A model generated the notes under the pieces. That model made no database searches. It worked only from the letters and a program-made list of their open reading frames with translations, and had not been told where the DNA came from. Both the position numbers and the translations under genes were made by a program. This document shows, one piece after another, positions 6,374 to 51,626 of a stretch of 64,000 nt of DNA (positions are counted from its first letter, which is position 1; the number at the start of each line of letters is the position of its first letter). This stretch comes from Mobula hypostoma. Taxonomy: Eukaryota. The stretch spans positions 12,586,001 to 12,650,000 of the forward strand of contig NC_086109.1 in NCBI RefSeq assembly GCF_963921235.1, in the 5' to 3' direction.

Positions 6374-6410
6374 ATGTGGATTCTAATTCTTCTCATTTGC
6401 TTCCTGCCGG
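6374..6410 (+). CDS. Signal-peptide (leader) exon MWILILLICFLP, phase-1 donor
   Basis: ATG 6374, 12 hydrophobic codons plus 1 nt, then G|GTGAGT. Joined to V1 it gives MWILILLICFLPVSGALWA. Confidence 0.9.
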
Positions 6411-9400
6411 GTGAGTAACAGCTAGTCCCGGACATTTTTAAAATCAGTGTTTTGGTCTTGTGCAATGTTCCCACAACAAAGATGTTTAACTATGTGTAGA
6501 CTTGTAAAGATATAAAAATGTCACTCAATAGGTGTTGTCAAGTAATTTCTTGTGTGTCTGCACTGGCGTACCACACATATAGCACCAATACTGACTAAGG
6601 TTTTTAGTATAAATTGTAAATGAAAAAGAAGGGCATTTAAGTTAAAAGTCTATACAAGTAACAAAGTTGAAACACGTAGGTCATGATTCTCTTCTGTTAT
6701 AAAGTTGCTGTTTACTTCCACGCCTGGTGGTGCATCGGGTGGCAACCTTGCTGTTTATTTAGCATTTGTCCAGTTTTATGAGGCTGTGTTGCTAGACGTT
6801 CAACCCAGCACGGTTGGAAAGTGTGCAAGGAGAACCCAGGTAATACACACAAAATGCTGGAGGAACTCAGCATTTTGTGTTTATTACTTTGATTTCCAGC
6901 ATCTGCAGGTTTTCTCTTGCTTGTGAAGGAGAACCTGGGACCACACACCATCATAGTCCAGTGCAGATGCCTCTTTACCACCTGCCGGTTATCTGTTAAA
7001 AGGTAATGTTTCGAATAATCTGCAGTTTTAATTGAGTACATATAATCGTCTCTTGTACTCAATTGTTTTTGTTCATTAAAATCCAGTTTAATGATCCTTT
7101 CTTCAGGACTGAAGGTCTGTGTTACTCTTGCAATGAGGAAGCATTTTCTTCTTGCTCAGTACTGCTAATCACGTAAACTTGTCAACTTCACCCACGGCCT
7201 TTTCACTCTAGTGGCCAAATGGAGTTTGTGAGTGTGTTGCCGATTCTTGGGGTTACGGGCATCACTGAGTTCAAGATAATAAATGGCCGGCATTCTGGAG
7301 CCACGTCAGAGAGGCAATTAGTAATCAAGCACATTGGTGGTTCATGCCTGACAGGAATGTTAGATCTCCTTATCAAAGGACATTACCAAACCAGCGTGCT
7401 TTGGTAAAACCTGGTAGTTTCTTCTTCACCCTCACTGTTACACAGTACAGTAACAAACTCCAAGGCTGAACTCATCCATGTGCCTTCATAATCTAATTCC
7501 ACTTGCCTATGGCATCCGTTAGTCTCATGAGACCATGGATTTGTGCAGGTTTCTTGGACCTTGGAAGGTTTCTAGGGCGCAGGCCTGGGCAAGGTTGTAT
7601 GGAAGACCAGCAGTTGCCCATGCTGCAAGTCTCTCCTCTCCACGCCACCGATGTTGTCCAAGGGAAGGGCATTAGGACCCATACAGCTTGGCACTGGTGT
7701 CGTCGCAGAGCAATGTATGGTTAAGTGCCTTGCTCAAGGACACAACACGCTGCCTCAGCCAAGGCTCGAACTAACAACCTTCAAATCACTAGACGAACAC
7801 CTTAACCACTTGGCCACATGCCTATGTCCCTCTAAATCTCTAATATGATCCAGGAGATGAAGGTGTTGAGGTCTACAGTGACTTAGTAGTTTGGATTCAG
7901 AATTGGCTTTTCTATTGAAGACAGAGAGTAGTGCTGGAAAGTGTTACTCTGGCTAGAGGTCCATTACCAGTGGATGCTCCAAAGGGATTGGTACTGGGGC
8001 TTCTGTGACTTGAATTAGAAGGTAGATGCCTGGCTTAGTAAGTTTGCAACTGACACAAAGGTTGATGGAGTTTGGGACAGTGTATAAGATTGTCACAATC
8101 CTTGGACTGTGTTGGTCTTTGAAGTAAAATAAAACATTTCACTGTATGTTTCAATGAACATGTGATAAAAAAAAACTAATCTAATTTCTTAGATCAGTTA
8201 CAGGTATTGGCTGAAAAATGGCCAGAACAGTTTGATCCAGTAAGTGTGAGTTGTTGCTCTTTGAGACGTCAAATGTAAAGGGACAGAAGTCAGTTGATGG
8301 CAGGACTTTTGACAGCATGGATATGACCTCTGAAAAGAGGATGCTGTCCAAGTTGCATGCCATCTTGGTCAATGTTTCCCATCCACTACATAATGTACTG
8401 GGTGGGCACAGGAGTACATTCAGCCAGAGATTCATTCCACCGAGATGCAACACAGAGCATCATAGGAAGTCATTCCTGCCTGTGCCCATCAAACTTTACA
8501 ACTTCTCCCTTGGAGGGTCAAACATCCTGAGCCAATAGGCTGGTCCTGGACTTATTTCCTGGCATAATTTACATATTACTATTTAACTATTTATGGTGCA
8601 ACTGTAACGAAAACCAATTTCCCCCGGGATCAATAAAGTATGACTATGACTATGACTATGACTATATAGGGGCAGTTTGGGGTTCTAGTTCATAGCTAGG
8701 GTGGTGGGGTAGAGATATGTCTCTACCAAAGGAGGTGTAACACACTCCTTCTCTCTACTAGCCTGCAGGTCACCATTGGGCAATGTGTAGCACTTGTTTA
8801 GCCCTGATCAGGGTAACACGATGCCATGGGAGCAGGTGGTGGATGGTCGTATGAGCAGCTGGTGTATATCATAAGTCCAGGTTATGCGACCACTGACGCC
8901 AGACAGACAATCTCTGACGAGTATTGATAATAGCTGGGGTCATCTGTCTTGTAAAGACATTGCCCAGAAGAAGGCAATGACAAACCACTCCTGTCGAAAA
9001 ATTTGCCAAGAACAATCATGGCCATGACTATGATTGTCTACATCATACAATATGGCACATAATGATGATGATAATGAATTCATAGCTCCCATACAATTAG
9101 ACGAGGTGGTACAGAAGGCATATAGCCTTCATCAGCAATTCATTCAGTAGAAAGTCAGAAAGTCATATTGCAGCCTTATAAAACTTTAGTTAGGCCACAC
9201 ATGGAGTAATGTGTGTAGTGTTGTGACCCCATCATATGAAGGATGTGGAAGCTTTGGAAAGAGAACAGAAGGGGTTTAACATGATTCTGCCTGGATTAGA
9301 GATTATGTGCTATAAGGAGAAGTTGTTCAAAGTTGGATTGGAGACAGAGACTGATGAAAGTTGAAAATTATGAGAGGCAGAGTTAGGATAGACAGTCAGA

Positions 9401-12400
9401 TCTAGAGTGATAGAATCACAGAAAAGTATAGTACAGAAACAGGCCCCTTGACCTATCTAGTCCATACCAACCCATTTAAACTGCTCATTTCCATCAACCG
9501 GTACCAAGGCTATAGCCCCCCATACTCCTACTATCCATGTCCCTAACCAGACTTCTCTTATATGCTGAAATCGAGCTTTCAAGTACAGGTGGAGGAAGCC
9601 ATCTTTATACATCTTTACAGACATATTCTCCATTTATTCTATTTCACCAACACCACAACAAGTCCAAAAATAGTCTACAGACCTCATGCAATACCAGTTT
9701 CTCTCGGTTTTCAAACTCTCACCATTCAGAACCCAGCTTGCTAAAAATTTAAGGAGCAAGTGAGGTGAGAATGGATGGTCAATGGTTCTGTGAGTATCAA
9801 GGGAGTCCATTGATCTTCACACCCAATTGTCAACTGAAAAATCAATTTTCTTGTGGGCATTCACAGCAGAAAAAGTATAATAGAATCAATGTAAGACTAC
9901 ACACTAACAAGAGACTGACAAATAACCAATGTGCAAATACAAAAATAAATAGAAATGTAACCAGCTGACCATCGAATATCATTATTTATTGTTAAAGTGC
10001 ACTTATGTATTCACCCTGGTAATGCTAAAATAGCTGTCTGTGCCTTTAAAAGAAAACAGTGATGTCATTATGCACGTGTGGAGTAGAAAGAAGAGTTGAA
10101 GGTTCTAGAAAGAATGTCGAAGGCTAGTCGCATGGTGAGGAAGGATGAATAATATTTGATAATATCCATGTAAATTTGTTTATACTTGTTTGTAAATCTA
10201 GAATATCGGTAATTTGACATGTTTTGCATGTGGATGCTTCATATTTTTGTGAGTAAGATGTTGGCATTATATAGTGTGGTTGCGTAAAGTTCCTTATCGG
10301 CCTAGTAGGTTAGTCTTTCTAGTAATTTATCTACAAGGCATTATACTGTAAAAGTCTATTTTTGTCTTACTTTATTGTTTCATGAGCAAATGTGAACATA
10401 ACCTAGTAATGTGAATGTGTTAATCTCTGTTCACGTAGTATGAGAGAGGATAACTTGTCTATAACTTGCCTATATGTGTTTGGAACTTAACCACGTGTGT
10501 GCCAAAGTGAGTATATCCCTTAATTAACATGAGATGTATTTATTCATATTTTTGATGTTGTGTATAAGGTACAGGGTTAGTGGGAGTCTAATACTGTTTG
10601 TATGGTTTTATAGAATTGCCACTACCGTATTGGTTTGTATAGTTTATTTTATTTATTTTCATACTGCAGACAAAACAAGGGTATGGACCGAAATTAAGCT
10701 GAGATTGTCACAGCAGGAACTGTGTTTTTCATTAATGTGTATTGTGATGTTATTTTGATACCCTCTTTCTGCATTAAAATACCTAAAACAGATAAAGGAC
10801 TTAATGACCCCTAAAAATATTTGTGGTCCTGCGTGTGTATTTTTCCCCAGGCTACAAAAGATAAGATAGGTAGATAAATAACATTCAGAAAATGAGACGT
10901 AGAGTCCTTGAAAGTGAGTCAGTAGATTGTGGAATCAGTTCAGTGTTGAGGTGAGCGAAGTTACCCATGGTGAAGCAGGAGTGACCCCACAATGTACTGG
11001 CATAGGGGAGGAAACACTGACATAGCAACAGCACCGGCAGTACTTCAGACCAAAGTCATTGGCTGTGAAGTCATGGGACACCTCCTCAGGACATGATCAA
11101 GAGTGATATTCTTATTGAGACACAACTGCAGACACTGGAGGAACTCAGTGAGTCAAGCTGCATCTCTGGGTGGGGGGAGATGGGTGAGAAAGATATTGTC
11201 GATGTTTTGGCTTGATTCCCTATCTTAGGACTGAGGGTGGAGAGGAAAGATAGTCTGTATCAAAAGGAGAGGGGGAGTGGCGAGACAGGAGCCAGTAGCT
11301 CATTAGTGGACCGAAGAGGGCTGTAGGATAACAGGCAGATGGAACCCTTTTAGGGTAAGGGGAGCGGTGATGTTTGGAGATAGAGCTGGGTGGATGATAG
11401 CTGGAAGCAGCCAGATGAAAACAAAAGGTAGATGGATCCAGGTGGATGGTAGGGAGGGTGACGATTGAGACAATGAGGAAGGTGAGGAGCAGGAACACAA
11501 CCAGTGCAAGAAGCTAATGATTAATATCTGATGATTTTTTACAATCATCTTTTATCATAAATCTGACGGAATTCCTTTTAAATCAATAATGGGCAGGCAG
11601 TAACTATTTGCAAAATGTACATCAGCATATGAAGCAATTCCTTTCCCACGGAATCTGAATATTCTTCTGTTTAATTTCAGATGCCTTGTTGGCTAAATTG
11701 ATTTTACACCTTAATTTTCTGAAGCACTTCCTCCTTAGTTTCAGGTGCATTGTGGGCAGAGAGTTATGTAAGAGGAGTTGTGGGAAGAGCGATCACAATC
11801 AATTGTCACTATGAAGCAACGTACCGCTCACACACAAAGTATTGGTGTCATGGATGGAGTCGTCATTGTTCAGTTTTAGTGGAAACAAATGGGCAACGCG
11901 GACGGAGTGGACGAGTGTCAATCACAGATAACCCGGAACAGGGAATATTTACTGTTACTATGGAGAATCTTCACTCTCGAGATAAAGGGTGGTACAGCTG
12001 TGGAATTACAGAAAAAAGTCCCAATCCGAGATTTTATGTTCATCTACAAGTAATTGATAGTAGGTTTCTTAGTGATTAACCTTGTGCTTTCAATGTTATT
12101 TATTTGCATTAAATTCTTCCTTTCCATCAAATCTGAAAATACCTCCCTCAGTTTCAGGTGCATTGTGGGCAGATGAATATGTAACAGGAGTTGTGGGAAG
12201 AGCGATCACAATCGATTGTCACTATGAAGCAAAGTACCACTCACACACAAAGTATTGGTGTCATGGATGGACTCATCAATGTTCAGTTTTAGTGGAAACA
12301 AATGGGCAACACGGACGAAGTGGACGAGTGTCAATCACAGATAACCCGGAACGGAGAATATTTACTGTTACTATGGAGGATCTTCACTCTGGAGATACAG

Positions 12401-15400
12401 GATGGTACAGCTGTGGAATTACAACACCAGGTCTCGATCTGTTATTTAAAGTACATCTGCATGTACTTGTCGGTAAGTTTGTCAGTAACTGATGTTATGT
12501 CCCCACTAATAAATTTGATCCGTGAAGTTTAGTCTGCCCAAATTGGACTTTAGTCCAGCCATATGTGAGGTGTTGCACTTTGAAAGATCAAATGTAAATG
12601 GTCAGTACATAGGTAATGGCAGGAGCATTAACAAAGCTGATTGACAGAGGGATCTCCGCGTGCAAGTCTGTAGCTCCTGGAAAGTAGCTGCTCAGGTTGA
12701 GAGCGTGGTAGTGCTTGCTATTATTGATTGAGGCACTGTGTTAAAGAGACAGGATGTTATGTTGCAGCTTTATAGAACTAGTTGGACCATATCTGCAGTC
12801 TTGTGTTAGTTCTGTTTACCCCCTTATAGGAAGAATGTGGAAGCTTTGGAAAGAGATTTACCAAGATGTTGCCTGGATTAGAGGGCATGGGCTATAAACG
12901 GGAGCTGGACAGACTTAGCTTGTATTCTGTGGAGTGCTGGAGGCTGAATGACATGTATACACTTGGATAATAAATTCGACTTTGAACTTTGAACTTTATC
13001 AGACAAGAGGCATAGACAGAGTAGATAGACAGTATCTTTGTCTCAGGGTTGAATCGTAGGGGGCACGCTTTAAGGTGAGGTGTGGCAAGTTCAAAGTAGA
13101 TGAATGAGACAAGTATTTTTACACCTAGAGTGATGGGTGCCTGTGATGCACTGCCAGGGGTAATTATTGTTGTTGTTCCTCTCCGTGCCCTGTGGCACAT
13201 CCGGTGACTTTTTTTCTGTTTCCTTAGCCTTTGTCTGTTTTGTATGACGCCAGGTTGCTAATTTGACACTCAACCCAGCATGGAAAGAAAGCATGCAAGG
13301 AGTCAGCTGGATTTGAACCTGGGACCATTTGCCTCGAAGTCCAGTGCTAATGCCACTACACACCAGTTGACTGCTGGGGTGATGTTGGAGGCAAATAGGA
13401 TAGAGGCAGATAAGAGGCTTTTAGATGAGCATTTAAATGTGCAGAAAATTGAGAGTTATGGACATTGTGTATGCAGAATGGATTGGTTTAGTTAGGTATT
13501 TAATTATGAGTTTAATTAGTTCATCACAACATCATGGGCTGAAGGGCTGTGCTGCACTGTTCCAAGTTCTAAGCTTTCTCCAGGAACAGTTAGGGCAGTA
13601 CCGGTATTCTGAGACTCCACAACAGTGCAACACTCTATGGGGAGCAGGCAGGAGTTGGGAAACCCCACCCTTGTTGCTCTCACCTAGTGGAGGATCTGTC
13701 GTACTGACTGGGCACCGATCTCCAGCGGAAGGCTGAACATATGTCCTGCCTCTGAATTGTATGAAATGTCACCCTGTCAGCGGTTTGCATTCAGACTAAA
13801 ACGAACAATCCAATAGTAACAGATCAGTGAGAAACAAAAATATTGCTCATGGACTGCATGCCTCAAAAGTCATAATAAGGGAATCAGTCTCCAACAGTCC
13901 TGCTGTTAAACTCTGGGCAACCTCAACCTTCCCAGGGAGTTTCTTAGCTTTCCAGGCTGACATGATCTCTTGCTACCTGTGTGTAAATATCAGCTGCAAG
14001 TCATTGAAACCAATCGCAATTCCACTCTCTACCCCGTTCATGAAGTTGATTGAGTTTATAGAAAAGGTAACCAAGGGCAGAGCGGTGGATGTGATCTTCA
14101 TGAGCTTCAGCACTGTAGACTGATTTGGAAGGTGTGATCACATGGAAATCAGGATAAGCTGAAAAAAAATTGTCTTGGTAGAAGGTGTATGACCATTGCA
14201 GTGTAGAGTTGCTTCCAGATTAGAGGTCTGTAACCAGTGATGTGCTGAGGGGATTGATGTTGGTTCCACTGTTGTGCGTCATCAGTGTTATTAGTCTGGA
14301 AGATGACATTATCCATGTGGTTAATAAGTTTGCACATGACAACAAAGTTGGTGGTATAGTGGGCAATGTAAAACATGGTCTACTTTACAAAGAAACTTCG
14401 ACCAACGTATGAAGTGGGTCAGAAATAGCAAATTAAATTTAATGCAGATAAATGTGAGTTGTTGCACTTAGGTAAGTTAAACTAGGGCAGGACTGAAGAA
14501 CTACACGGTAGGGCCCTGGGAAGTGTTACATAACAGAGAGAAAAGTAGATATTTCCCTGAAAGGTGAGACACAATTTGACAGGATGGTGAAGAATGCACT
14601 TGGCACACTTGCCTTTAATGGTCAGGGGACTGAGTTCAAGAGTTATAATGGCAAGTTACATCTAAAAGATATTTGTATCTAAAAGATACAAGCAAAAGAT
14701 ATTTGTGAAGCTGCATTTGGAATACTCTGTTCTGGTAATCTTGGTAGAGGATTGAAGTCATTAACCTGGAATGGGTGTAAAAGTAGTTTATCAGTCTGGG
14801 GGGCTCAAATTATGAGAAGGGATTGGATAGGCATGGACTTTTTCTTCTACAGTGTAGGAGGCTAAGTGTTGGCTTTATAGAGATTTGTAAAGAAATACAG
14901 GAGGGGCATTGATAATGGCAAAAGCCCTATTCCTGGGCTAATGCAATCTAAAAACAGAGGGCATGCATTTAAAGTGAGAGAGGGAAGATTTAGAAAGGAT
15001 ATGAGGAGTGACATTTTTCACCAAGTAGGTGATGGGTACATTGATAAAGCCTCCTATGGACATGGGTACAACTACAACACTTAAAGTATATTGAAACAGG
15101 TACATGGATGAAATGTAGAGAGGGATATGTGACAAATGCAGGGAAACAGGACTAGTTTACAAGTAGACAATCTGGTCAGCTCAAATGAGATAGACTGAAG
15201 GGCTTGTTTCCATGCTGTGTAACACCAGCTTTATGACTCTGAAGCCACAGAACATGTGATATATATGTCACAAATTCCTACGCTAATGTCCTGCTTAGGT
15301 TTTCCAGGATACTTTCTGACTTATGCCCATCAAAGTGCCAAACCAGTAGAACATGCATACATCACCACTGGGAGCTGGTTTCCTACTGCTGAGAGAGATT

Positions 15401-18400: not shown

Positions 18401-21400
18401 AAGAGCTGCTGATTCAAGTTGGAGGAGAAACATGCAAGGGAATGATATGAAAGGAAGAGCCTTTCTGTAGTTTCTCATGAAGTACAAGGTAACACGTCTC
18501 TTACAAAACAAAAATGTGAACAGGAGGCTTCTCAGCACATTTAGGAGCATGTAACACTTTACAAAATGCTAGAGGATCTTAGCAGGCCATGTAGTATCTT
18601 TGAAAAGGAAAGGTCCAGGCTGAGACCCTTCATCAAGACTGGAAAGGACAGGGGGGATACGCTGGAACAAGAAGGTGGGGGGAGAGGAAGGAGTACAAGC
18701 TAGAAGGTGGTAGGTGAAGCCAGGTGGGTAGGGGAGGGTGGAGGAAGTAAGAAGCTGGGAGGTGACAGGTAGAAAATCTAACAGGAAAGAAGAGTGAACC
18801 ATGGGAGAAAGTGGCGTAGGAGGGATGCCAAGAGAAGATAACAAGCAGATGTGGAGAAGAGAAGGGATAAGAAGGGAGCTAGAGTAGGGAATGGAAGAAG
18901 GAGAATGAAGGAGAGGGAAAAGAATGAAGCACATTTAATGGTTTTGCTGTCATCAGACAGGCCAGGTAAGGATAGTGAATCTTCTTCTCTAGAGGACAGT
19001 AGAGAACTCAATGGACTTTAAAACAACCTTATAGTGCCTTGGAGCCATCATTAATGTTAGTCTTCTCTCTTGTTTTTAATTTTAAGCGGTAACATATTGT
19101 TATTTTTTTTGCCATATCTTGCTCCTAATGAATTAGAGTTATAAACTCTAATGTTAAGGTCCCAATTTCACTCTACCTTAAACTTTGATTCTTTGAAATC
19201 TATTGCATCAACCAGACATGTGCCTCTGGCTTATTCATTTGTGCTGTTATGTACATTCACACAGCTCTTTCCTCTGTTTTATTGGCAAGCTTCCTCAGGC
19301 CTCTCTCTGACATGATTCCTACTTCAGTTTTCCTTGTAATCCACTTATTTTCAGCCCTTTATTCTGCTTTATTTTCAACCAACTTCCTGGTACTTTACTG
19401 TCAACACTTTCCCCACTACAGGGTTTTCTCCCAATAGGTCCATTGATCTAATAACCATTTTAGTCATGTCTCCAAGATTCTCGCCCTGAAATGCCCCACT
19501 GAAGCCATTATCTGATCTTTCTTTTCACTAAGCCCACCTCCCAGACTATGAAGTGTTCCCATATTTCACAGTTCTTTTACCGCTCATCATGTGCATAGTT
19601 CTGTACCACCCTGTTCCCTCGGGACCAATCAATTATCCAACTCCAATTTCCTGTATAATCCCTGGTTCCTGAGTCCACCTGCCCTACTCCTTGTCCTTGG
19701 TGACATGAACCATGCTCACCTTCTGTCTCCAAATCCTGCTGCAGTGAAAGATGTAGGTAGTAATGCAGATGGGATGCATTTCTGATGGAAATTGTCATGG
19801 GTGATGCAGGAACTGGAGAAGTCCAGTCCCAGTCTGTTCGGATTGGCTGCAACATCTCACCCACAGTCACCATCAGCACAGGCGCGACACAAGGCTGTGT
19901 GCTTAGCTCCCTGCTCTACTTGCTTTATAATTCTGACTGTGAGGCGAAGCACAGCTCCAATAGCATACTTACGTTTGCTGCCACACCACTGTAATTGGCC
20001 AAGTCAAAGCTAGTGACGAATTAGCATTCCGGCTGAGTACTACCACAACAACACAACCTCTTACTCAAAATCTGAGACCGCTGAACGGAACCTGATCTGG
20101 ATCTGGGGCGTAGCCTCCAAACATCCGGACCTGCCTCTTGGTTTTTTTGCACTACCCTACTTTCCGTTTTTCTATTTTCTGTTTATGATTTATAATTAAA
20201 ATTTTTAATATTTATTATCGATTTTCAATTCAGGGAGCAGGAAGCGCAGAATCAAATATGGCTTTGATGATTGTACGTTCTAGTATAAATTGTTTGGCGA
20301 CAATAAAGTATAAAGTATAAAGTCAGCAAGATCAAGGATCTGATTATTGTCTTCAGGAGGAGGAAACTGGAGATCCATGGAGATCTATTCGCCTCCCAAC
20401 TCATAAACACTCTCAGCTGTTGGCAGTCAGAAAATATTATAGTAGATTTCCTCATCCTCTTCAGTGCTACATATTGTGAATTGTACTATATATCAAAGAT
20501 CATAAGATTTAGGAGCAGAATTAGGTCATTTGGCCCATCAAGTACTCCGCCATTCAATCTTGGCTGATTTATTATTCCTCTCAACCCCATTCTCATGCCT
20601 TTTCCGCATAAACTTTGATGTCTTTACTAGTCAAGAATCTATCAACTTCCGCTTTAAATATACCCAATGACTTAGCCTCTACAGCCATCTATAGCACCTG
20701 CTGGCTAAAGAAATTCCTCCGCAAATCTATTTTAAAGGAGCATCTTTTTATTCTGTGACTATGCCCTCTGGATCGAGACTCACCTACTCTAGAAAACATC
20801 CTGTCCACATCCACGCTGTCTAGGCCTTTCAATATTTGATAGGTCCAATAAGATCACCTCTCATTTTTTGAAACTCCAGTGAGTACAGGCAAACACTCCT
20901 CATACTTTAATCCTTTCATTCCCAGGATCATTTGCATCAAGCTCTCCTAGACTAGGGGTTCCCAACTTGGGAGTCCATGGATCCCTTGGCTGATGGTAAG
21001 GCCCATTGGCATAAAAAAGGTTAGGAAACGCTGCGCTAGACCGTCTGCGATGACAGCACATCCTTTCTTCAATAAGGGGCCCAAAACTGCTCACCATATT
21101 CCAAGTGCAGTCTGGTCAAGCCTTATAAAGCCTAGTACTTGGATAATTTCTCAGCAACTAAGTGGAAAATATTTTGTGATCCCTCTGTTCTATTTGCAGG
21201 CATGCGCAAGATTAGGATTAAGTCTTTCAATATTCAATAGATTTCAATGCTCTCTAACTTGAATAAAGGTGGAAACAAAGTTTAAACTGAATTTTATTTC
21301 CTTGTCTCCACAGGGTCAGGATATACTTGTGAAAGTTCTGGAACTGAATCAGTAACAACTCCTTCTACAAATCCAGAAATAAGAGACAATGATAGACAAA

Positions 21401-24400
21401 GGTAAACTCGATCCGGTTACATTAGATAATGCAATGGTCTCAATGCTGACAGTTTGACTAGAAGTACTTTTATGGGACAATTATTTGGGAGAAAACAACA
21501 TAGTCTGAGGATTGTCCTTTTATGAGATGCTCACGATGTGAGTGTATTTGCAGTGAGGTCTGTACATATCAGCCCAGAATCTCCCAACAACAGTACCACT
21601 GTTCAGATTCCTAAAAACAGTGCTTGAAAATTTTTATAAATTATTTTTTTACATAGATTTTCAATTATTTCAAATTTCCTTAAATAGTGTGATTTCTTTC
21701 ATTAATCTTCCTGCCAGAAGAGTACAGAGAAAATTTACAAGGATGTTACCAGGTCTGGAGAACCTGAGTTATAGGGAAAGATTGAACAGGTTCGGACTAT
21801 ATTCTTTAGAATGCATAAGACTGAGGAGGAGATTTGATAGAAGTATACAGAATTATGATGGGGTATTGATAGGGTAAATGCAAGCAACCATTTTCCACTG
21901 ACGTTGGGTAGGACTACAACCAGAGGTCATGAGTTGAGGGTGAAAGGTGAGAAGTTTAAGAGGAACATGAGGGGAAAATTCTTTACTCAGAGGGTCGTGA
22001 GAATGGAATGAGCTGCCAGACCAAGTAGTGCATACGAGCTCAAATTCAACATTTAAGAGAAGTTTGGATAGGTTCATGGATAGTAGGGGTATGGAGGGTT
22101 ATGGTCCTGCTGCAGGTCGATGGGAGTAGACAGTTTAAATGGTTTTTGCATGGACTAGATGGGCCAAAAGGCCTGCTTCTGTGCTGTACTTGTCTATGAC
22201 TATGACTGTAATCAAAACATTTCATAGATTTGACTGGTGTTTTCCCAAACTATATCATGTTTAAATTTAGAAAAACTTAGAAGTGACATTTTTGATCCTT
22301 TGGTTAAATTTGAAGAAACTTGGAAACCATTTATTCAACATTTTCATATGATGTAATTTGACCTTTTCCGAATCCTTCTATTAACTTAAAATATATGAAT
22401 AGAGGAGGGGAGTTGATGACATCATTGAATGTATTCGATTTAAGTACTGGTCTAGCCTTGTTTTGTTCCGTTTGCTTTTTTTTTCGGGTTTAGTATCTAG
22501 TTTTTTTTGGGGGGGGGAGTTCTTTGCATTTTTTTTTCTTTTTATTTGTTTTGTCTCTATGATTAACTATATTAAGAGTTTGGAAGTCTATTACTGTATA
22601 CTTGTATTATTTGAAGTCTTTTTTTGTACACATTTGTCAACAGTGAGATTATTCCAATCTCTCTGTATCAATACTGTTGTTCTGTTTATAATTTTGGAAA
22701 ATTAGTAAAAAGATTTTAAAAGAAAAAGATTTGGCTGGTGGACAGAAAGTCATGTGGGTGGGAGGAGTTTGGCCAACAGTAAAGAATTTTACATCAGTTT
22801 CCTGGGCCTTGTTTGCTCTGCCTCCTCCACCCCTCCCCTTAAGGGGACTGACACTTTGCTGGCCTTGCAAGAGCAGACTTCACCACTGAGGTTGGGGTTG
22901 GCTTCTAAATGTAGTGTTTAGGTCCGACTGCAAATTGTTGGGTCAATATCTTGGTGAGAAGGGCTAAGGAGGGTTGCATGGTTATTAGTGTCATCTGTTG
23001 GATTAAACTGACTCAATCAGTGCTTTCAGGTGGATGGTGCAGTCCCCGTGTAATATTCAGTGAGGAGCAAATTGCCGCTCTCTTATGGTCTGCACAATAC
23101 TTATCTCCATCATTATCATTGGTCATTATCACATGGTTGCTTATGGGATCTTGCTAGGCATATATTTGCTGCTGCATTTCTACACTGCAACAATATCCAA
23201 CACCTCACTTACTGGGCTGCACACATCCTGAGGTCATGAGTGGAGTTCAAAGATTGCAAGTATATTGATTATCATAGTATGTGCGCAGTATACAACCCTG
23301 AGATTTGTCTTCCCACAGGCGGCCCCAAAACAGAGAAACACAATGGAACCTGTTCAAAGAAAATATCCAACACCCAACTGACAAAAAGAAAAGAACAAAT
23401 ATGCAGATGGCAAAAAAAATGAGTGAAAAATAAATTACAGAGTCATTGAAACAGTTTGATTCACTTCAGTTCAATTTAGCACTGTGTCGTTGACTGCAGA
23501 CTGTAGAGACAGTCCGCCCCAATCAAAAGCGAACACAATAGCAATAAAAAGGAGCAATCAGAAACTAGAAACACATATAACGTATAATAAGTTGTGTAAA
23601 TGCCAGATGCTCATTGCTTACTATTAGCCAAGAATCAATGTGAACCAAGGCTGATGCCTTCTTGTTGTTTGTACCACAGACTCATTCCCATAGTCGTGCT
23701 CAGCGTCACTGGAGTTCTTGTCATGGTTTTTCTCATTTGCCTAATTTGGTGCCTAAACTCTAAACTCAAGGGTGAGTTTTGAACTTCTTAAAGTATTTTC
23801 ATGATATTTTGTGAGAATTTGCTGCACTGCATTGAGAGATTTTGTTTGGTTCTTAATAAAAAGTAATAGCGTTAAGGACATACTTGACTGAAAATCAAAA
23901 ACCTGCTGGTGTTGAAATCTGAAGCAGAAATAAATACGGGAAATGGTAGGTCAGGCAGTTATTCTGATGAAGTTCTCAGGAGCTGGACTGCTCACTGCTT
24001 CTCTTTCCCCAGGCAGAAGCAGTACTTCCAGCATTTTCTGTTAACATGATCTCATCTGTATGCTGTAAATTACAAAGATAAGTAAAAAGAGCTAAAGAGG
24101 AATAAAGTAATGTTTATAGGTTCATGGATTGTTCAGATATCTGATTATGAAAGGGAACAAGCTGTTCCTGAGTCACTGAGAATCTGGCTTCAGGCTTCTG
24201 TACTTCCTCCCTGATGGAAATAATGGGAAGAGCACATGTCTTTGAGATTCATTATTGAGTTGAGCACTTATAGAAAATGATTCTGTTTGTTCTGATGTTG
24301 AGTGCAGTGGCCAAAGCATATTCTGGCTCTATGTGGCGATTCATGCCTGTGGTGGAACCAAGGTTTTGCATGCAACACATGGACAATTAACCCTGGTACT

Positions 24401-27400
24401 GACAGGAATTTTCAAAGGTGATATTGTATTTTCCAGAAACCAAGTTCAGGATGTTTCACAGAACACGCAAGAATGAAACCCAGGTAAGGGCTTGAACTGT
24501 GAATGTTTTAAAATTTACAGCAAACAAATCAGGCCATTCACCCCATACCATACACAAATCTCCTCACATCACTCTTCTTTAGCATATCCTTCTGTTCATT
24601 CTCTCTTCAGTATTATCCAGCATTTCCTTAAAAAGAAAGTATTTTACTGAGCTCATCCTCAGAGTGGCCACATTCTTTAATATTTTTACTGATGGGCACA
24701 AGGTGAGTCTGGCTCTAGCTTTACTGTTAAAAATGGGAACTTTCTAATTCTATATTTGTGTTCAGCGATTATTCAGTCGACATTTCATATTTCCCCACTG
24801 AAGCAAAATCAGAAATATAAAGAAAGTTCACTCTAACACCCAGAATCAGCATCAGGTCTAATATTATTGACATATATTGTAAAATTTGTTGTCTGCAAGT
24901 GAATAAAAAGCTCTCCTTTTCTGTGGTCATAAGCTGCCCTCAGCTACCCGCTTTCTCACTGTACCTTTCAATGCTGACAACATCACTCCAAACATATTGC
25001 CGATTCTTGGATCAATTATCAGCCATCTTTGTTAATGATATTTTCTACAATATGCTGAATGCTTCCGACTACCTGATGAATTTTTAACTGGACACTCCAG
25101 TTGATAAGATCTTTGGCCACTTGGAATAAATGGTCAATAGGGTTCAAAATCTTCTCACTTACATCCACTGTCTCTCCACATTTCCACAGGTTGCTGATCT
25201 GTCATAGATCTTCCCTCTTGTCCATCTGCACTTGCTTAGCCTCACTGCTCGTCACTTTGGCTTCAGTTGTCCTGGTTCTCAGCTCTGGGATCCACTCCCT
25301 GAATACCTGCAACTCTAAACTGCTCCATTAAACATTGTTGACTGCAAACAACAAAGATTTTGTGCCTTGCTCTGATGTCATCCACATTCAGTTTCAGTCT
25401 TTTATCTGAACCGTGCCCTCCAAGTATCCGGACCTGCCTCTCGGTTTTTTTTGCACTACCTTAATTTCCATTTTTCTGTTTTCTATTTATGATTTATAAT
25501 TTAAATTTTTGATATTTACTATCGATTTGTAATCCAGGGAGTGGGAAGTGCAGAATCAAATATCGCTGTGATGATTGTACGTTCTAGTGTCAATTGTTTG
25601 GCGACAATAAAGTATCTCTCGAAAGTATCTCTCTAATGATGCCACCGTGAAGCATTTAGAATAGTTTTACTTGTATTGAATTTGCTGTGGTTCTTGTACA
25701 TTTACATATAGCCAGTGTTGATTTAGAATCATTAGCTGTTATCATTCACGCTAGAAAATTACAGTTTTATAGTCACATTTAAGGAGATGAAGCTTAATAA
25801 AAAAAATGAAAAGCAAAGCAGAGTTGGGGCAGGGGCAGTGGTGACTTGATAGAAGTTACAAGGTTGTCAGAGTATTTACAGTGAGGTGAAGATGTTTCCA
25901 CTAGAAGGGGAGAGCAAATGTAAAGCTATATGTATAAGGCAATTAATAATGGACCCACCCCATCAAAAATTCTAGATTAAATTCCATTCGCAGATTATTC
26001 AAGGTTCACTTTGTTTATTGTCATTCTTCAGTAGAGAGGTGTAAAGGAGAACAAAATGATGGCTATTCCGGATATGATGTAACATAAAAACACAATAAGC
26101 ATAAAGAACTAAACTTTAAAAAAAACACAATAAATATAATTACATTAGATTAGCCTATATACGCAGACTGATCATGATGACATTCCAGAGTTAGTCACTG
26201 CTGGAGCTAAGTGAAGTGAATCAGGTATCGTAAAGGAAAGTGTGTAAGCACATGGGGAAAACAATAGCATGGCTTAACACAAGTAAATAAATTATGTTCA
26301 AACACCAGATAGACATATAAAACCAATCCTGATACTGGGTTTCAATCTGAAATGTTAAAATTCCTCCCAACCATAGACGCTGCTCAACCTGCGAGGTCTT
26401 TAGCAGATCGTTCACTGCAAAAATTGGCTAGGGCTTTTTGAGTCCGCAGAATGACTATTATGGGGAAGAGACAGTAGCTCACCTCAACGCGAACGGTGGG
26501 TTTGCAAAGAGGGTGTGGGGGAAAGATGCAAGTGCCTGTGTTGCAGTTTATCCCGAGCAGCTGCGTGACAGAAGATTCTCTAACCTACGGGCTGTCCGCA
26601 GGGGCACACACGGAGATGGACGCCAAGTGCTGCTGGCAGATCATCAACTTGGTGAAGACGTCCTTTGGTCTGCCTGAAGCCTGTTGTTCTGCCAGCGCAT
26701 CGAGATGTCTATAAGGGAATGCTACCGACTGTCACATTCCAAGATGGAGGATTATGGGCTGTAGGAATCACAAAAGCTTGGTGCAGCCACTGCGAAGGCT
26801 TGATGGGGAAAGACCACAGTGTAGATTTCATCTCTTACTGGAAAGGGAGGGTTGGGTTAGTGGAGGAAGCCTTTCAATTATGTAATAGGGTACCACCTCA
26901 GGGGGCCAAATGAGAGGCAGCAGTGCTATTGATTGATAAGTAGGAAAATAATAGAACAGTATCTTAAGCATCAACTTTGTGAATGTAAACAATGAAAAGA
27001 TGATGCACGGTTTATTCTTGTAAGTTTTTTTTATTATGAATAAAGTTTACCTTGTTTAAAAAAAGAACTGTTTGAGAGCTGCTTAGTCATAGACTTCTGC
27101 TCAGCACCTTTCATATTCATCAGACATAAACTGGTCTTTGCATTTTTCATTCTTTAGGAAACAACAACATCTGTAGAGCAAAATGCTTATGCGACAGTGC
27201 TGGAGATTCAAAGCGACAAGGCTCCTGCCCAGATGGCTAACAAAGAAAATGGGGCCATGGATGCAACAATGGAATTTCAAAGGAAATCAACAGCAGATCC
27301 CTCTGTTAATGGAGACAGTAATGTCATCTACACAGATGTTAAATTTATAAACAACCCCCCAAAGGTCAGCAGAAAACATCTGTCTCCTAGCATGCCAGAG

Positions 27401-27439
27401 AACTCTACTAAGACAATTTATGCCAGTATTGCTCCTTAG
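6374..27439 (+). CDS. Inhibitory CD300/pIgR-like (MDIR-like) Ig receptor gene, 8 exons: join(6374..6410,11739..12059,12152..12472,15639..15951,21314..21401,23680..23771,24437..24483,27158..27439); L-V-V-C2-stalk-TM-ITIM/ITSM
   Basis: All introns are GT..AG and exon phases chain 1-1-1-1-2-1-0. The only break is a frameshift in the C2 exon (313 nt). Skipping C2 gives an open 1188-nt CDS (395 aa). The family call rests on the V-domain Cys pattern; no ortholog is assigned. Confidence 0.88.
7503..7822 (-). mobile_element. tRNA-derived SINE with an RTE-like tail
   Basis: The - strand head GTGGCCAAGTGGTTAAGG...AGTTCGAGCC has A- and B-box-like motifs; the body matches 1900-2092. Confidence 0.75.
8310..8665 (+). 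mobile_element. Rex1/Babar 3' end nested in CR1
   Basis: SHPLHNVL...RCNTEHHRKSFLPVPIKLYN; (atgact)n tail. Confidence 0.8.
8698..9078 (+). mobile_element. RTE/BovB-tail SINE-like element with a 9-bp TSD
   Basis: TTCATAGCT at 8689-8697 and 9079-9087; BovB-like 3' end (aaaccact...gccaagaac) and (tga)n tail; second copy at about 28890-29220. Confidence 0.75.
9956..10856. mobile_element. Probable solo LTR (Gypsy-like), 901 bp
   Basis: Termini TGTAACC...GGCTACA (6/7 inverted match); interrupts a LINE 3' segment that resumes at 10857. TSD not clean. Confidence 0.5.
11120..11530. repeat. Purine-rich Penelope-associated interspersed repeat
   Basis: Shares the ctggaggaactcag...gcatct head and purine-rich body with the copies at 18570-19010 and 54890-55370. 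Confidence 0.5.
11739..12059 (+). CDS. Ig V-set exon V1 (CD300/pIgR/TREM type)
   Basis: Acceptor ctccttAG, donor A|GTAGGT, 321 nt, phase 1-1. Contains ITINCHY, KYWC, CSVLV, RVSITD and DKGWYSC: the canonical B-F Cys pair plus the extra C-C' pair. Confidence 0.95.
12152..12472 (+). CDS. Ig V-set exon V2 (tandem duplicate of V1)
   Basis: Acceptor ccctcAG, donor G|GTAAGT, 321 nt, phase 1-1. Same four-Cys pattern as V1 (DTGWYSC). Confidence 0.95.
12530..13560 (+). mobile_element. CR1 3' fragment with a tRNA-SINE inserted on the - strand (about 13155-13372)
   Basis: CR1 RT C-terminal motifs; the SINE head has a GGTTCAAATCC B box. Confidence 0.7.
14050..15240 (+). mobile_element. Degraded CR1 RT-to-3' fragment
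   Basis: GRAVDVIFM motif and a CR1-type 3' end. Confidence 0.7.
15639..15951 (+). CDS. Ig C2-like exon with a frameshift in an A8 run (about 15872-15879)
   Basis: Acceptor tcccacAG, donor G|GTAAGC. Motifs VSCESVQGSLPIQYTWY and QYYCTAS. The frame ends in TGA at 15881-15883, while the shifted frame (SEILDVTASNIIEKC) aligns with the intact paralogue at 41149-40832. Confidence 0.88.
16400..17072 (-). mobile_element. Two CR1 3' ends (about 16400-16560 and 16908-17072)
   Basis: (cataaga)n and (atagaac)n tails in reverse; 16908-17072 closely matches 3960-4123. Confidence 0.7.
17341..17904 (-). mobile_element. Tc1-like non-autonomous transposon
   Basis: Flanked by TA; carries the HTH remnant KKSDLSDFDCGMIVGAGWGGLSISESADLLGFS. 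Confidence 0.85.
17920..18560 (+). mobile_element. Possible highly degraded I/Nimb-clade ORF1 remnant
   Basis: Scattered matches (VGIPL, KWNCCRG) across frames; weak. Confidence 0.3.
18570..19010. repeat. Purine-rich Penelope-associated repeat
   Basis: gagacccttcatcaagactgg motif and a body homologous to 54890-55370. Confidence 0.55.
19790..20325 (+). mobile_element. Rex1/Babar fragment (RT piece plus 3' end)
   Basis: TGATQGCVLSSLLYLLY; the 3' end with an (aaagtat)n tail is shared with 25400-25625 and 56818-57105. Confidence 0.75.
20490..21130 (-). mobile_element. CR1 3' fragment hosting a hAT MITE
   Basis: CR1 3' motifs on the - strand, interrupted at 20953-21033. Confidence 0.7.
20953..21033. 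mobile_element. 81-bp hAT (Charlie-type) MITE
   Basis: Ends TAGGGGTTCCCAAC and GGTTAGGAAACGCTG; 8-bp flanks TCCTAGAC and CGCTAGAC. Confidence 0.75.
21314..21401 (+). CDS. Ser/Thr-rich stalk exon GSGYTCESSGTESVTTPSTNPEIRDNDRQR
   Basis: ccacAG acceptor, AG|GTAAAC donor, phase 1-2. Homologous to the - strand exon 36881-36791. Confidence 0.82.
21710..22205 (+). mobile_element. CR1 3' end
   Basis: RVQRKFTRMLPGLENLSYRERLNRFGLYSLE; (tatgac)n tail. Confidence 0.85.
22210..22730 (+). mobile_element. L1-clade LINE 3' end
   Basis: CLNLEKLRS...KFEETWKPFIQHF C-terminus, T-rich 3' UTR and A-rich tail. Confidence 0.7.
23680..23771 (+). CDS. Transmembrane exon LIPIVVLSVTGVLVMVFLICLIWCLNSKLK, no charged TM residue
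   Basis: ccacAG acceptor in phase 2 matching the stalk exon; G|GTGAGT donor; hydrophobic run of about 25 aa. Confidence 0.9.
24437..24483 (+). CDS. Juxtamembrane cytoplasmic exon ETKFRMFHRTRKNETQ
   Basis: ttttccAG acceptor, CAG|GTAAGG donor, phase 1-0. Bridges the TM and last exons in frame. Confidence 0.82.
25400..25625 (+). mobile_element. Rex1-like 3' end, 5'-truncated
   Basis: Closely matches 20100-20325 and 56860-57105. Confidence 0.7.
26432..27066 (+). mobile_element. L1/Tx1-clade LINE 3' end
   Basis: EETVAHL...GFAKRVW and DSLTYGL...CCWQIINLVK across frames; AATAAA and A tail. Confidence 0.75.
27158..27439 (+). CDS. Terminal cytoplasmic exon with NAYATV, ITIM VIYTDV and ITSM TIYASI; stop TAG
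   Basis: tctttAG acceptor in phase 0; 93 codons plus stop. Motifs match the consensus (I/V/L/S)xYxx(L/V) and TxYxx(V/I). Confidence 0.9.
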   Translation, partial: ETTTSVEQNAYATVLEIQSDKAPAQMANKENGAMDATMEFQRKSTADPSVNGDSNVIYTDVKFINNPPKVSRKHLSPSMPENSTKTIYASIAP

Positions 27440-35216: not shown

Positions 35217-35307
35217 CTTAGTTTCTTGCTTGAACTATTTGATTGAAATAGTGAAGATAACCATCAGAACAAAGAGCAGCCAGCGCCCCAGCTTCCATAC
35301 TGTGTAT
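35217..35307 (-). CDS. TM exon of gene A, YTVWKLGRWLLFVLMVIFTISIK-stop; charged TM, no signalling tail
   Basis: ctttgctcAG acceptor in phase 2 (same as the inhibitory TM exon); TAG 35237-35235; AAG|GTAGGT donor. Confidence 0.8.
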
Positions 35308-36790: not shown

Positions 36791-36881
36791 CTCAGGGAAG
36801 CAATGGAATGTATTCCTATCCCTGTAGAACCTGCAGTTGTCATTGACTCTGCTGTAGTAGTTTCACAAGAATAATTACGTC
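36791..36881 (-). CDS. Stalk exon of gene A, GRNYSCETTTAESMTTAGSTGIGIHSIASL
   Basis: caacAG acceptor, AG|GTAAAT donor, phase 1-2. Homologous to 21314-21401. Confidence 0.8.
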
Positions 36882-44378: not shown

Positions 44379-44672
44379 CATCATATACTCATAGATTCAC
44401 GGTAAAAACTATATCAGTACCCGATTCTGTAATTCCACAGTCATACTGTGCTGTATCTCCAGACACAAGGTCCTTCATAGTAACAGTAAATATTCCTTGT
44501 GCTGGGTTATCTGTGATTGACTCTCGTCCATGTAAAAGAAAACATCCTACTCTCCACCAACGGCACCAATACTTTGTGTGTGAGCGGTACTTTGCTTCAT
44601 AGTGACAATCGATTGTGATCGCTCTTCCCACAACTCCTTTTATATATCTCTCTGCCCATAATGCACCTGAAA
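44379..44672 (-). pseudogene. Ig V exon V3 with acceptor AG>AA, 27-nt in-frame deletion and TGA three codons before the donor
   Basis: Aligns to V1/V2 (294 = 321-27 nt). Reads cctcAA|tttcAG, so the second acceptor gives a start at 44666. Ends GTG AAT CTA TGA GTA TAT GAT G|GTATGT. Confidence 0.88.
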
Positions 44673-48200: not shown

Positions 48201-49894
48201 ACAAACTGAGCTTATATTTAGTGGTGCTTAAGTATCCTGAAATGTGCATTTACAGTGAGATGCAAAGTGTTTAAGTCATTAATATCTTTAATCAGGAAAC
48301 CACCTGATTGTTGGCAAAATCCTCCTGGGCCATTGATGTCCTTCAAGAACAGAGCTTCACTATTCCAGCCCAGTTCAGTTTATGCGTGAGTCCAAACCCA
48401 CCTCTGTGAACTGCGCTATGAATCACCCAATAAAAAATTGAGTTCCATTATGTAGGCTATGAGAGGGTTAAAATAATGTGCAGTGTGCAATTAGTCATGT
48501 TGAGTAAGGTCCATGAAAACACGGCTTCTCTATGTACAGCATGAGACCCAAGGACACCAAATGCACTGAAGCAAGGATGCTAATGATGGACTAAAGGGTA
48601 CACTTTACAACTGGACAATAGTTTTTACTGAAACTGAGGTATAATTCTATTTTTTGATCCGCTTAGATGCAAATAAAGGTTATTAGCTCATACATGATGC
48701 ATTGTGATTGGTGACTGATACATGCAAATACAGAATTTTAAAGTTTGCAAGTTTTCAGTTGGTCAATATTTGTACAAAAAGGAAATTCTGAGATAAAGTT
48801 CAGTGACAGGCACTGAACTGGTCTTCTGCATCAGTATTGGTATATTATTGTCACATGTACCAAGATACAGTGAAAAGCTTGCCTTGCATACTGTTCATAC
48901 AGAGCAGATCATTGCACAGTGCATTGAGGTAGTACAAGGTGAAACAATAACAATGCAGAATATCGTGTAAAAACTTTTGAAGAAAACTGCAGTGCAGGTA
49001 AATGATGAAGTGCAACATCACAGCAAGGTAGACCACAAGAGTCCATCTTATGGCACAAGAGTTCCGCTGAAGAATCTAATAACAGCAAGATAGAAACAGT
49101 CCTAAAGCCTGGTGGTATGTGCTTTCAGGTTGTATCTTCTTCCAGGAGGAGTAAAGAGAATTTCCAGGGTGACTGGGGTATTTGGTTATGCTGGCTGCTT
49201 TACTGAGGTAGTGAGAAGTACAGACAGAGTCCAGAGAGGGGAATCTCCTTCCTGTGATATGCTGAACTATAGCCACAACTTTCTGCAGTCTCTCACAGTC
49301 GCGTGTTATGCTTTCAGACAGAATGCTTTTTCTGATGCATCAATTAAAAATTGGTTAAGGGTGGACAGGGACATACCAAATTTTGTTAATCTCCTGAGGA
49401 AGTCAACAACTTCCCATTGGCAATGAGGGTGAAAGGGTTAACTGGGTATTATTGATCTGGACAGCTGCAAACAGATAGAAAGGGAGAGGGACATGGTTTC
49501 TGATTTCAGGACTAACACAATCTATTCACAATGCAATGAGAAATATGATCCCATAAAGATGACTGTAAAAAGACCCAAATGGATTTTTAAAGAACAGAGC
49601 CGATTGTGAACTGGAGACATTATATTTGAGAGATTAATTCCATTGTTGCCTTGAGTAAACGCCGGAGTGCATTATAAGTGTTACTTTTTCCAGAAGAGAA
49701 TGGTCTTCACATTTTGTTTATATCACTTGCATAGACCTTGCAAATTCAATGTCCACAATTCATGCTGACAATATCAGATATATTTGCTGACAATCCATCT
49801 GGTGGCGATCCAGATACGAAGCAATTAACGGTCAACACGAGAATATAATTGAGTTACATTTTCTCTATTTACCCGTCTGCACATACAGTGTTTA

Positions 49895-51505: not shown

Positions 51506-51589
51506 TGAAACCATCTTTGCTGTGAAAGTGGTGCATGAGACCCAACCTAACACTGATTATTAGCATGTCTATCTCTGGCTGTCACTCAC

Positions 51590-51626
51590 CGGCTGGGGAA
51601 CAGACGAAAAGAATCAGAATCCACAT
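51590..51626 (-). CDS. Leader exon of gene A, MWILILFVCSPA
   Basis: 37 nt from ATG to G|GTGAGT; same size and phase as 6374-6410 and similar in sequence. Confidence 0.88.

Follow-up and report, generated by a model that had tools for sequence, protein, structure and literature searches.

The 64,000-nucleotide stretch of Mobula hypostoma DNA analysed here (the window) contains two facing, tail-to-tail genes of the MDIR (modular domain immune-type receptor) family, one of the activating type on the minus strand (gene A) and one of the inhibitory type on the plus strand (gene B). They are probably two diverged and damaged members of a large M. hypostoma MDIR cluster, gene A decaying and gene B carrying a frameshift in its C2 exon. 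The exons, the lesions and the splicing of the 3' half of gene A are observed directly, and it is likely that neither gene currently makes a full receptor. Since both genes carry disabling lesions as assembled, the window is an ordinary, partly decayed corner of a large cluster. A preliminary description had proposed a working, lineage-specific pair of receptors; neither gene has an intact full-length frame as assembled, and the MDIR family, common to sharks, rays and chimaera, is old.

Exons and lesions of the two genes

Gene B comprises eight exons in the order L-V-V-C2-stalk-TM-tail (Table 1), in agreement with the preliminary description of a plus-strand gene with an uncharged TM and an ITIM and ITSM in its tail (VIYTDV and TIYASI). 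Its splice sites are all consensus and all exons except C2 are open. The leader matches that of the M. birostris ortholog model P0213 at 100% and shares 78% nucleotide identity with the leader of gene A. V1 is 90% identical to the V1 of P0213, its sister in the tree (support 100/94), and V2 is a tandem copy of V1 separated from it by a 92-nt intron. The stalk peptide is identical in P0213, while the stalk acceptor flank and exon start share 90% nucleotide identity over 31 nt with gene A 36911-36881. The small cytoplasmic exon has a weak tblastn match to ESKSNTHHRGKANGTQ of paralogs and good splice sites (ttttccag before it, gtaagg after it), and is required for the frame of the last exon. Alignment of the tail with paralogs P0200 and P0179 and with skate MDIR2 indicates that two of the four tyrosine motifs are degraded, the first (NAYATV) being degenerate and the second (AMDATM) lost by a change of Tyr to Asp.

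The C2 exon of gene B, as assembled, goes out of frame by 1 nt at the A8 run and meets an in-frame stop at 15881-15883, a defect absent from the preliminary description. Its alignment to the C2 of gene A has a 2-nt gap at the run, and its translation reads CGKKK-stop, the next frame going on with SEILDV...TTII to the donor G/gtaagc. The A8 run puts the exon out of frame, so that an mRNA with all exons would end after the C2 F strand; a complete receptor (395 aa, V-V-stalk-TM-ITIM) is encoded only by the C2-skipped splice form. RefSeq P0266 leaves the exon via an internal donor 5' of the A8 run, and P0213 consists of L-V1-V2-stalk without C2. Neither automatic model includes the exon's 3' part, which suggests that the defect is real and common to M. 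hypostoma and M. birostris. If the A8 run were a homopolymer assembly error, an intact L-V-V-C2 inhibitory gene would be restored. Elsewhere in gene B the exons and splice sites seem to be fully conserved, as would not usually be expected of an old pseudogene.

The leader, V, C2, stalk and TM exons proposed for a minus-strand gene are all present in gene A, but the V exon carries a nonsense codon and the leader-like exon shows no sign of use. The TGA, which the preliminary description did not mention, lies three codons before the V donor, at a conserved Gln. In the same exon 27 nt are deleted in frame in C'-C'' (opposite 44551-44531), the upstream acceptor usual in the family reads caa instead of cag, and the domain sits on a long branch (0.40) of the V tree. 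Over 42777-44589 a contig of DNA run X6 shows no differences and matches the TGA. The TM is Arg-bearing as first described; its supposed lack of a tail stems from a TAG at 35237-35235 in place of a conserved Trp. The exon aligns through this stop to the tails of paralogs (ISVSWFTRETK versus ISIK-stop-FKQETK), and its donor AG/gtaggt at 35217 connects to another 3' exon, located below 35200. The tail removed by the TAG is short, ~20 residues, and carries no known motif. The C'-C'' region is likewise shortened in pIgR D5, the best-matching stretch in the V search against pIgR. The TAG and the shortened C'-C'' alone are insufficient to prove loss of function.

Table 1. Exons of gene A and gene B in the window.
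Feature	Positions	Strand	Description
Gene B leader	6374..6410	+	MWILILLICFLP, phase-1 donor gtgagt
Gene B V1	11739..12059	+	321 nt, CD300/pIgR-type V-set, 4 Cys; Pfam V-set 3.4e-13
Gene B V2	12152..12472	+	321 nt; Pfam V-set 1.9e-14
Gene B C2	15639..15951	+	313 nt, not a multiple of 3; A8 run 15872-15879
Gene B stalk	21314..21401	+	GSGYTCESSGTES...DNDRQ, phase 2 exit
Gene B TM	23680..23771	+	LIPIVVLSVTGVLVMVFLICLIW, uncharged; hydropathy scan and sequence
Gene B small cytoplasmic exon	24437..24483	+	ETKFRMFHRTRKNETQ, phase 1 to 0; unnoticed in the preliminary description
Gene B last exon	27158..27439	+	stop 27437-27439; ITIM VIYTDV, ITSM-like TIYASI
Gene A TM	35217..35307	-	YTVWKLGRWLLFVLMVIFTISIK; WKLGRWLLF...ISIK-stop, Arg-bearing
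Gene A stalk	36791..36881	-	GRNYSCETTTAES...SIASL
Gene A C2	40832..41149	-	FCRL-like, CESVQGSLPIQYTFY; Pfam Ig_2/Ig_C17orf99; transcribed
Gene A V	44379..44666	-	alignment and translation; in-frame TGA 44391-44389
Gene A leader-like exon	51590..51626	-	MWILILFVCSPA, donor gtgagt

Family membership and relationship of the two genes

Both genes are members of the MDIR family. Skate MDIR2, MDIR3 and MDIR5 were retrieved by a ray paralog query (1e-89 to 1e-223), and the pieces of the two genes matched skate MDIRs in BLASTP at 1e-31 to 1e-56 (V), 1e-20 to 1e-46 (C2), 7e-09 (Arg TM) and 3e-10 (tail). Identity to MDIR2/3/5 is 53-74% for V, 52-68% for C2, 67% for the Arg TM of gene A (with the MDIR5 TM) and 33% for the tail; the TM of gene B is 46% identical to that of MDIR2. 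The best PDB matches of the V domains are pIgR, including its D1, and CD300LF, CD300A and CD300C. The whole-chain E value with pIgR, 3e-51, is a sum across the V domains of that protein; its D1 by itself gives 3.8e-13, and CD300LF and CD300A are matched at 2.6e-21 and 1.4e-18; NKp44, TREM and TCR rank below. These matches, and those of every module to skate MDIR2/3/5, uphold the earlier assignment to CD300/pIgR-type, MDIR-like V domains of a cartilaginous fish. Four Cys, forming a B-F pair and a C-C' pair, occur as DCHY, YWC, QCS and YSCG in V1, V2 and the V of gene A. The C2 exon matches six FCRL5 domains in PDB (best 9e-07), with CE..GSLPI.Y.FY and YYCTA.N in common. All Ig exons of both genes are phase 1 in and out, and both the ITIM-tail and the charged-TM endings are present.

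Genes of this family combine phase-1 exons for a CD300/pIgR-type V, an FCRL-type C2 and a short Cys-containing stalk with one signalling end, either an uncharged TM followed by ITIM/ITSM tyrosines or a WKxGRW TM. By analogy with mammalian receptors, the ITIM/ITSM tyrosines may recruit SHP phosphatases, and the Arg/Lys of the WKxGRW TM may pair with an ITAM adaptor. Two stricter assignments were rejected. A CD300 gene proper has a single V, a mucin-like stalk and no C2, whereas gene B has two V and a C2 and gene A a V and a C2; a pIgR proper has four to five tandem domains of its type, a long tail lacking an ITIM, and no charged TM, so that both the domain order and the endings differ. The label 'pIgR-like' is given by automatic annotation alone. 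An MDIR multigene cluster is indicated by the exons joined in RefSeq model P0266 and by the location of many paralogs of M. hypostoma and M. birostris on one chromosome-size contig.

The leader, V, C2 and stalk exons of the two genes are homologous in alignments, as had been noted from the outset. Identity between the genes is 60-68% in V and 66% in C2, so that near-identical ectodomains were not found. V2 of gene B is 85% identical to paralogs of other rays, C2 of gene A is 78% identical to Pristis members, and the V of gene A is not sister to the V domains of gene B in the V tree. The two ectodomains are not each other's closest relatives, and the earlier view of the genes as a working pair is not supported. 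Paired receptors are also recognized by frames that are both intact and expressed; here there are the TGA and TAG of gene A, the 313-nt C2 of gene B and little RNA.

Transcripts, gene models and alternative explanations

The RNA evidence consists of low-depth contigs (3-10x) from four small runs, with tissue not given. The joints 40831/36880 and 36791/35307 are found in Logan contigs of all four runs with GT..AG ends, as predicted in the preliminary description for the passage from C2 to 36881 and 35307. Neither of the results named there as refuting, missing junctions or V domains falling outside the CD300/pIgR/MDIR group, was obtained. The second of these shows no differing letters in the four runs, and the TAG is confirmed in RNA contigs. 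Record 24 of contig X5 spans three exons (40948-40831, 36880-36791 and 35307-35217). RNA depth over the V exon of gene A is 0 in X2 and X5; the exon is missing from the RNA contigs, and the observed transcripts do not use it. In contig X2, the 28 letters that precede C2 fall outside 41152-46779. Of the sequence words of gene B, 0-1% occur in the RNA runs. Tissue or depth may account for the absence of the gene A V exon or of gene B.

RefSeq covers both loci under misnamed or chimeric models, and several family members are named 'Fc receptor-like protein 2/5'. The 3' exons of gene A, which were expected to be easily missed by annotation, are contained in P0254 (M. hypostoma 'Fc receptor-like protein 2', 169 aa), which is 100% identical to the C2 (its residues 10-117), stalk and TM. 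The gene for P0254 spans 63.8 kb. Its product begins at a distant exon with MTSACCHSP, a sequence that is no signal peptide, and contains no V domain; the first nine residues are encoded nowhere in the window. P0254 also omits the leader-like exon and, going by this RefSeq model only, the leader is unused in transcripts. P0266 contains V2 (100% identical to its residues 228-331) and C2 of gene B. It is a chimera of 1350 aa that crosses gene B and, in antisense, gene A, and it joins exons from at least three genes of the family, both within the window and outside it. All RefSeq models are automatic, and one is plainly chimeric.

In the explanation that we consider probable, gene A would be a decaying activating-type gene that has lost a usable V (nonsense codon, 27-nt deletion, loss of the canonical acceptor) and bears a nonsense codon at the TM Trp; its C2-stalk-TM is still spliced, in a low-level transcript that would start at a distant upstream exon and lack signal peptide and V. 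It is unlikely, by comparison, that gene A alone is dead and gene B is an intact inhibitory MDIR, its extra A being a homopolymer error or its product a C2-skipping V-V receptor. Gene B does have open exons apart from C2 and consensus splice sites, it yields an uninterrupted 395-aa receptor from unaltered exons when C2 is skipped, its M. birostris ortholog model skips C2, and C2-less family members exist (P0063, P0006). Almost no gene B is seen in the RNA runs, however, the automatic models of both species avoid the C2 3' part, half of the tail tyrosine motifs are already degraded, and the M. birostris model stops after the stalk, with no TM. Quite improbable is a combined reading, in which gene B works as a two-V inhibitory receptor by routine C2 skipping, as suggested by the M. 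birostris ortholog model, and a promoter or gene lying far upstream has co-opted the C2-stalk-Arg-TM of gene A. With all MDIR Ig exons in phase 1, the omission of a damaged module leaves the frame intact; if this reading were true, exon-level salvage would be a route to new architectures in a modular family.

Less probable again is that the C2-stalk-TM of gene A still works as the 3' module of a longer gene on the minus strand, with its leader and V beyond the window end and the exons at 51626 and 44666 as bypassed relics. The long span of P0254, with its first coding exon outside the window, and the contig X2 exon upstream of C2, outside 41152-46779, are consistent with such a gene, but the sole recorded model starts without signal peptide or V, the TAG at the conserved Trp persists in the TM exon, and depth is low. 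The least probable reading is a working convergent inhibitory/activating pair whose lesions are assembly errors, private alleles or bypassed. Opposite signalling ends on homologous ectodomain modules, the correct splicing of gene A C2-stalk-TM in four runs and the conserved splice sites and tail motifs of gene B would fit it. Against it stand two independent nonsense codons in gene A (TAG in RNA contigs, TGA in DNA run X6), a V without RNA depth, an annotated product without signal peptide, the C2 length of gene B and ectodomains that are not sister.

With two damaged genes as the favoured explanation, the devil-ray MDIR cluster holds decaying members beside intact ones. The 1350-aa chimera and the leaderless 169-aa 'FCRL2' are misleading models, and tallies of the two receptor types, activating and inhibitory, based on motif scans would overestimate the functional repertoire. 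The significance beyond annotation is small.

Comparison with known receptor systems

MDIR2, MDIR3 and MDIR5 of Rostroraja eglanteria were reported by Cannon et al. (2006, Immunogenetics 58:362, as cited in PMC3031540); the family, with its combination of V and C2 and its two types of signalling ending, has been known since 2006. The skate MDIRs share with genes A and B the V type, the C2 type (CES.QGSLPI.Y.WY), the YSCE stalk and the same endings, namely a WKVGRW TM with a short tail or an uncharged TM with an ITIM tail ending in xIYASV. MDIR3 also has V-V tandems keeping the SGALWA start. The devil-ray copies differ in being damaged, gene B by the C2 frameshift and gene A by two nonsense codons and the V deletion.

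The likeness to CD300 (CMRF35-like) proteins and pIgR lies in a V with an extra C-C' disulfide, for which these are the best solved-structure matches, and CD300 likewise includes both inhibitory members with an ITIM and activating ones with a charged TM. CD300, however, has a single V and no C2, whereas here V is combined with an FCRL-like C2; pIgR, with its four or five V-like domains, possesses neither an ITIM nor a charged TM; and FCRL proteins lack a CD300/pIgR-type V and have different signalling ends. KIR, LILR, PILR and Siglec-5/14 resemble the present case in having ITIM and charged-TM forms in one cluster, and their classical activating receptors resemble the inhibitory form with a truncated tail. 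In true pairs the ectodomains are nearly identical, whereas those of genes A and B are 60-68% identical and each is nearer to other paralogs.

Exon content and family membership

Six-frame translation of the window, combined with self-tblastn and self-blastn, detected three CD300/pIgR-like V exons and two C2 exons, and no further exon in the window matched the V or C2 sets at a meaningful E-value. These are distributed between two tail to tail genes of the modular domain immune-type receptor (MDIR) family, the inhibitory-type gene B and the activating-type gene A. The leader exons of the two genes share 78% identity over 77 nt, and the starts of their stalk exons (21284-21314 in gene B, 36911-36881 in gene A) match at 90%. 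Pfam assigns the V exons to V-set and the minus-strand C2 exon to Ig_2/Ig_C17orf99. Together with the self-comparison matches, this homology and these assignments showed the exon coordinates of the preliminary description to be right.

Exons of genes B and A in the window
Gene	Exon	Position	Strand	Remark
B	Leader	6374-6410	+	
B	V1	11739-12059	+	
B	V2	12152-12472	+	follows 92-nt intron
B	C2	15639-15951	+	313 nt
B	Stalk	21314-21401	+	
B	Uncharged TM	23680-23771	+	
B	Cytoplasmic	24437-24483	+	47 nt; absent from the preliminary description
B	Last	27158-27439	+	
A	Leader	51626-51590	-	
A	V	44666-44379	-	
A	C2	41149-40832	-	
A	Stalk	36881-36791	-	
A	TM	35307-35217	-	

Among solved structures, the V domains are best matched by pIgR and CD300LF/A/C, far above NKp44, TLT-1, TREM2, TIM and TCR, which bears out their earlier placement with CD300/pIgR. 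The C2 domain matches six FCRL5 domains. An exhaustive search with V2 yielded 2599 relatives, and the ten closest whose source was examined come from rays and sharks, plus a 'pIgR-like' protein of bichir. The MDIR family was described in 2006 from the clearnose skate (Cannon et al., as cited in PMC3031540). Skate MDIR2, MDIR3 and MDIR5, from whose deposited sequences the family features were taken, were retrieved by a ray paralog at 1e-89 to 1e-223, and each module of the window matches them directly. Intact paralogs carry either a WKVGRW TM with a short tail (P0035, P0175 and MDIR5) or an uncharged TM with ITIM tails ending in xIYASV (P0058, P0179 and MDIR2/3).

Introns and the spacer between the genes are occupied by scattered LINE ORF fragments. 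Reverse-transcriptase/LINE fragments of the LYSLEFRRMRGDLIE type are found at 2673-4056, 29666-30091, 31130-31552, 31984-32749, 49869-51334 and 52273-52659, and a LINE-type RT tail (MRGHSFKV...) lies at 39200-39436 on the minus strand. At 39000-39999, 42380-42579 and 46380-46779, which are high-copy transposon fragments, contigs of both the RNA and the DNA runs reach very great depth, with a DNA maximum of about 800,000.

Structure of gene B

Splice sites were checked for every exon of the gene B model. The cytoplasmic exon fixes the start of the last exon and rules out a direct splice from the TM exon to 27177. Paralog tails bear four tyrosine motifs, and the gene B tail can be aligned to them: its motif 1 is degenerate (NAYATV), its motif 2 is lost through a Tyr to Asp change (AMDATM), and an ITIM (VIYTDV) and an ITSM-like motif (TIYASI) are retained. 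The C2 exon is entered in phase 1 and must be left in phase 1, yet its length does not fit this; as assembled, its frame slips at a run of eight A (15872-15879), with a 2-nt gap relative to gene A, and terminates in CGKKK-stop at 15881-15883, the next frame reading SEILDV...TTII up to the donor. When C2 is left out and the other exons are unaltered, an uninterrupted L-V-V-stalk-TM-tail protein of 395 aa results. The low-depth RNA runs, searched for gene B expression, gave no evidence of it, containing 0-1% of the words of 11600-15999.

Behind the short V1-V2 intron (12060-12151), V2 has retained both a duplicate of the acceptor region and the SGALWA start; the arrangement reflects local tandem duplication of a V exon. 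Skate MDIR3 shows this V-V junction as well (VSGAVWA). V1 and V2 are not mutually exclusive cassettes, as they join in frame through this intron and both occur in the M. birostris model P0213. That protein is the gene B ortholog: it has 90% identity to gene B in V1, is identical in leader and stalk, and groups with gene B as its sister in the V-domain tree. It is modelled as L-V1-V2-stalk, with no C2 and no TM. Window positions 4792-4866 (plus strand) match its first 25 residues (MNKYTFDWNHRVRAH...) at 88%. In the P0213 model this stretch shares its frame with the gene B leader, and it is probably either a 5' exon further upstream or a uORF.

The RefSeq M. hypostoma model P0266 (LOC134355857, 1350 aa) overlaps the whole locus on the strand opposite to P0254, the model over gene A. 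It runs through the L-V-C2 of an upstream gene, V2 of gene B, a shortened gene B C2, cut at an internal donor (T/GTGGGA) just ahead of the A8 run, and the stalk; it next uses plus-strand ORFs at 35400-35549 and 43451-43531, antisense to gene A, and continues into additional family genes past the window end. P0266 is a chimera.

Lesions and transcripts of gene A

Gene A departs from the family norm in four respects. An in-frame TGA at 44391-44389 in the V exon, three codons ahead of the conserved donor, replaces the conserved Gln of the family ending ...LQVSDE. This exon has also lost 27 nt, in frame, from the C'-C'' region, and the upstream acceptor used by the rest of the family, cag followed by TTTCAGGT (giving VSGALWA), reads caa. 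The TM exon translates as YTVWKLGRWLLFVLMVIFTISIK-stop, with a TAG at the Trp of the paralogs (ISVSWFTRETK vs ISIK*FKQETK). The absence of a tail claimed for this gene holds in so far as the frame stops after the TM; because the TAG sits at the Trp of the paralogs and alignment similarity persists beyond it, the tail is missing through a nonsense mutation, the exon in its normal form coding for about 20 residues more, and the good donor at 35217 leads to a further 3' exon. The alternative donors upstream of the TGA are all weak, and their use would cut away the F or G strand.

M. hypostoma DNA (run X6) agrees with the assembly across the TGA with no differences, and a sister-species contig at 44245-44429 differs from the window at 4 letters. 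The match of a sister-species DNA contig (run X10) ends at 44562, its loose letters having the reverse complement ATGGATGGA (HGW, cf. gene B V); either the sister-species ortholog is free of the gene A changes near the 27-nt deletion, or a paralog may be the source of this contig.

Four small M. hypostoma RNA runs contain 6-10% of the words of 35200-45199. Among contigs placed on 35200-41199, each of the four runs has the joint 35307/36791, bounded by CT..AC, which reads GT..AG on the minus strand, and a single contig consists of 40948-40831, 36880-36791 and 35307-35217 consecutively, with zero differing letters. The predicted junctions from C2 to 36881 and from 36791 to 35307 are thereby confirmed. 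For contigs placed on 40780-46779, depth over the V exon is zero in two of the runs; in a contig crossing the C2 acceptor, the 28 letters upstream of it are found nowhere in 41152-46779. The observed transcript has neither leader nor V domain. An RNA contig from run X2 spans 35280-35547 in one piece, and may represent plus-strand read-through across gene A or merely unspliced gene A pre-mRNA.

The C2 exon matches P0254 (M. hypostoma 'Fc receptor-like protein 2', 169 aa) at 100% identity; the gene of this protein extends over 63.8 kb. P0254 opens with MTSACCHSP, continues with C2, stalk and TM as far as ISIK, and has neither signal peptide nor V domain. MTSACCHSP was not found in the window, either as whole and partial peptides or as degenerate DNA with a donor, and therefore the first coding exon of P0254 lies outside it.

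Relationship of the two genes and predicted signalling

The preliminary description had taken genes A and B for partners in a paired-receptor locus, a claim that identities and phylogeny do not sustain. The gene A V domain has about 60-68% identity to the V domains of gene B and about 63% to every other family V, and V2 of gene B has 85% identity to paralogs of other rays. The C2 domains of the two genes are 66% identical, that of gene A being 78% identical to sawfish members. In a maximum likelihood tree of 51 V domains, V1 and V2 of gene B each pair with the M. birostris ortholog (support 100/94 and 98/97). The gene A V domain does not fall beside them; its branch is long (0.40 vs a median of 0.071) and its place within the elasmobranch clade is not resolved in this tree. 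Both copies are damaged, gene A in V and TM and gene B in the C2 frame (as assembled). Genes A and B belong to one cluster but are not partners with matching ectodomains.

By analogy with CD300, KIR and LILR, the phosphorylated ITIM and ITSM of an intact inhibitory MDIR would recruit SHP phosphatases, and an intact WKxGRW MDIR would depend on an ITAM adaptor. As predicted from their reading frames, the all-exon products of genes A and B could not signal in this manner; gene B could do so only through C2 skipping, or if the A8 run is an assembly error. Like the FcR-gamma partners, the WKxGRW form has an Arg near the outer end of its TM.
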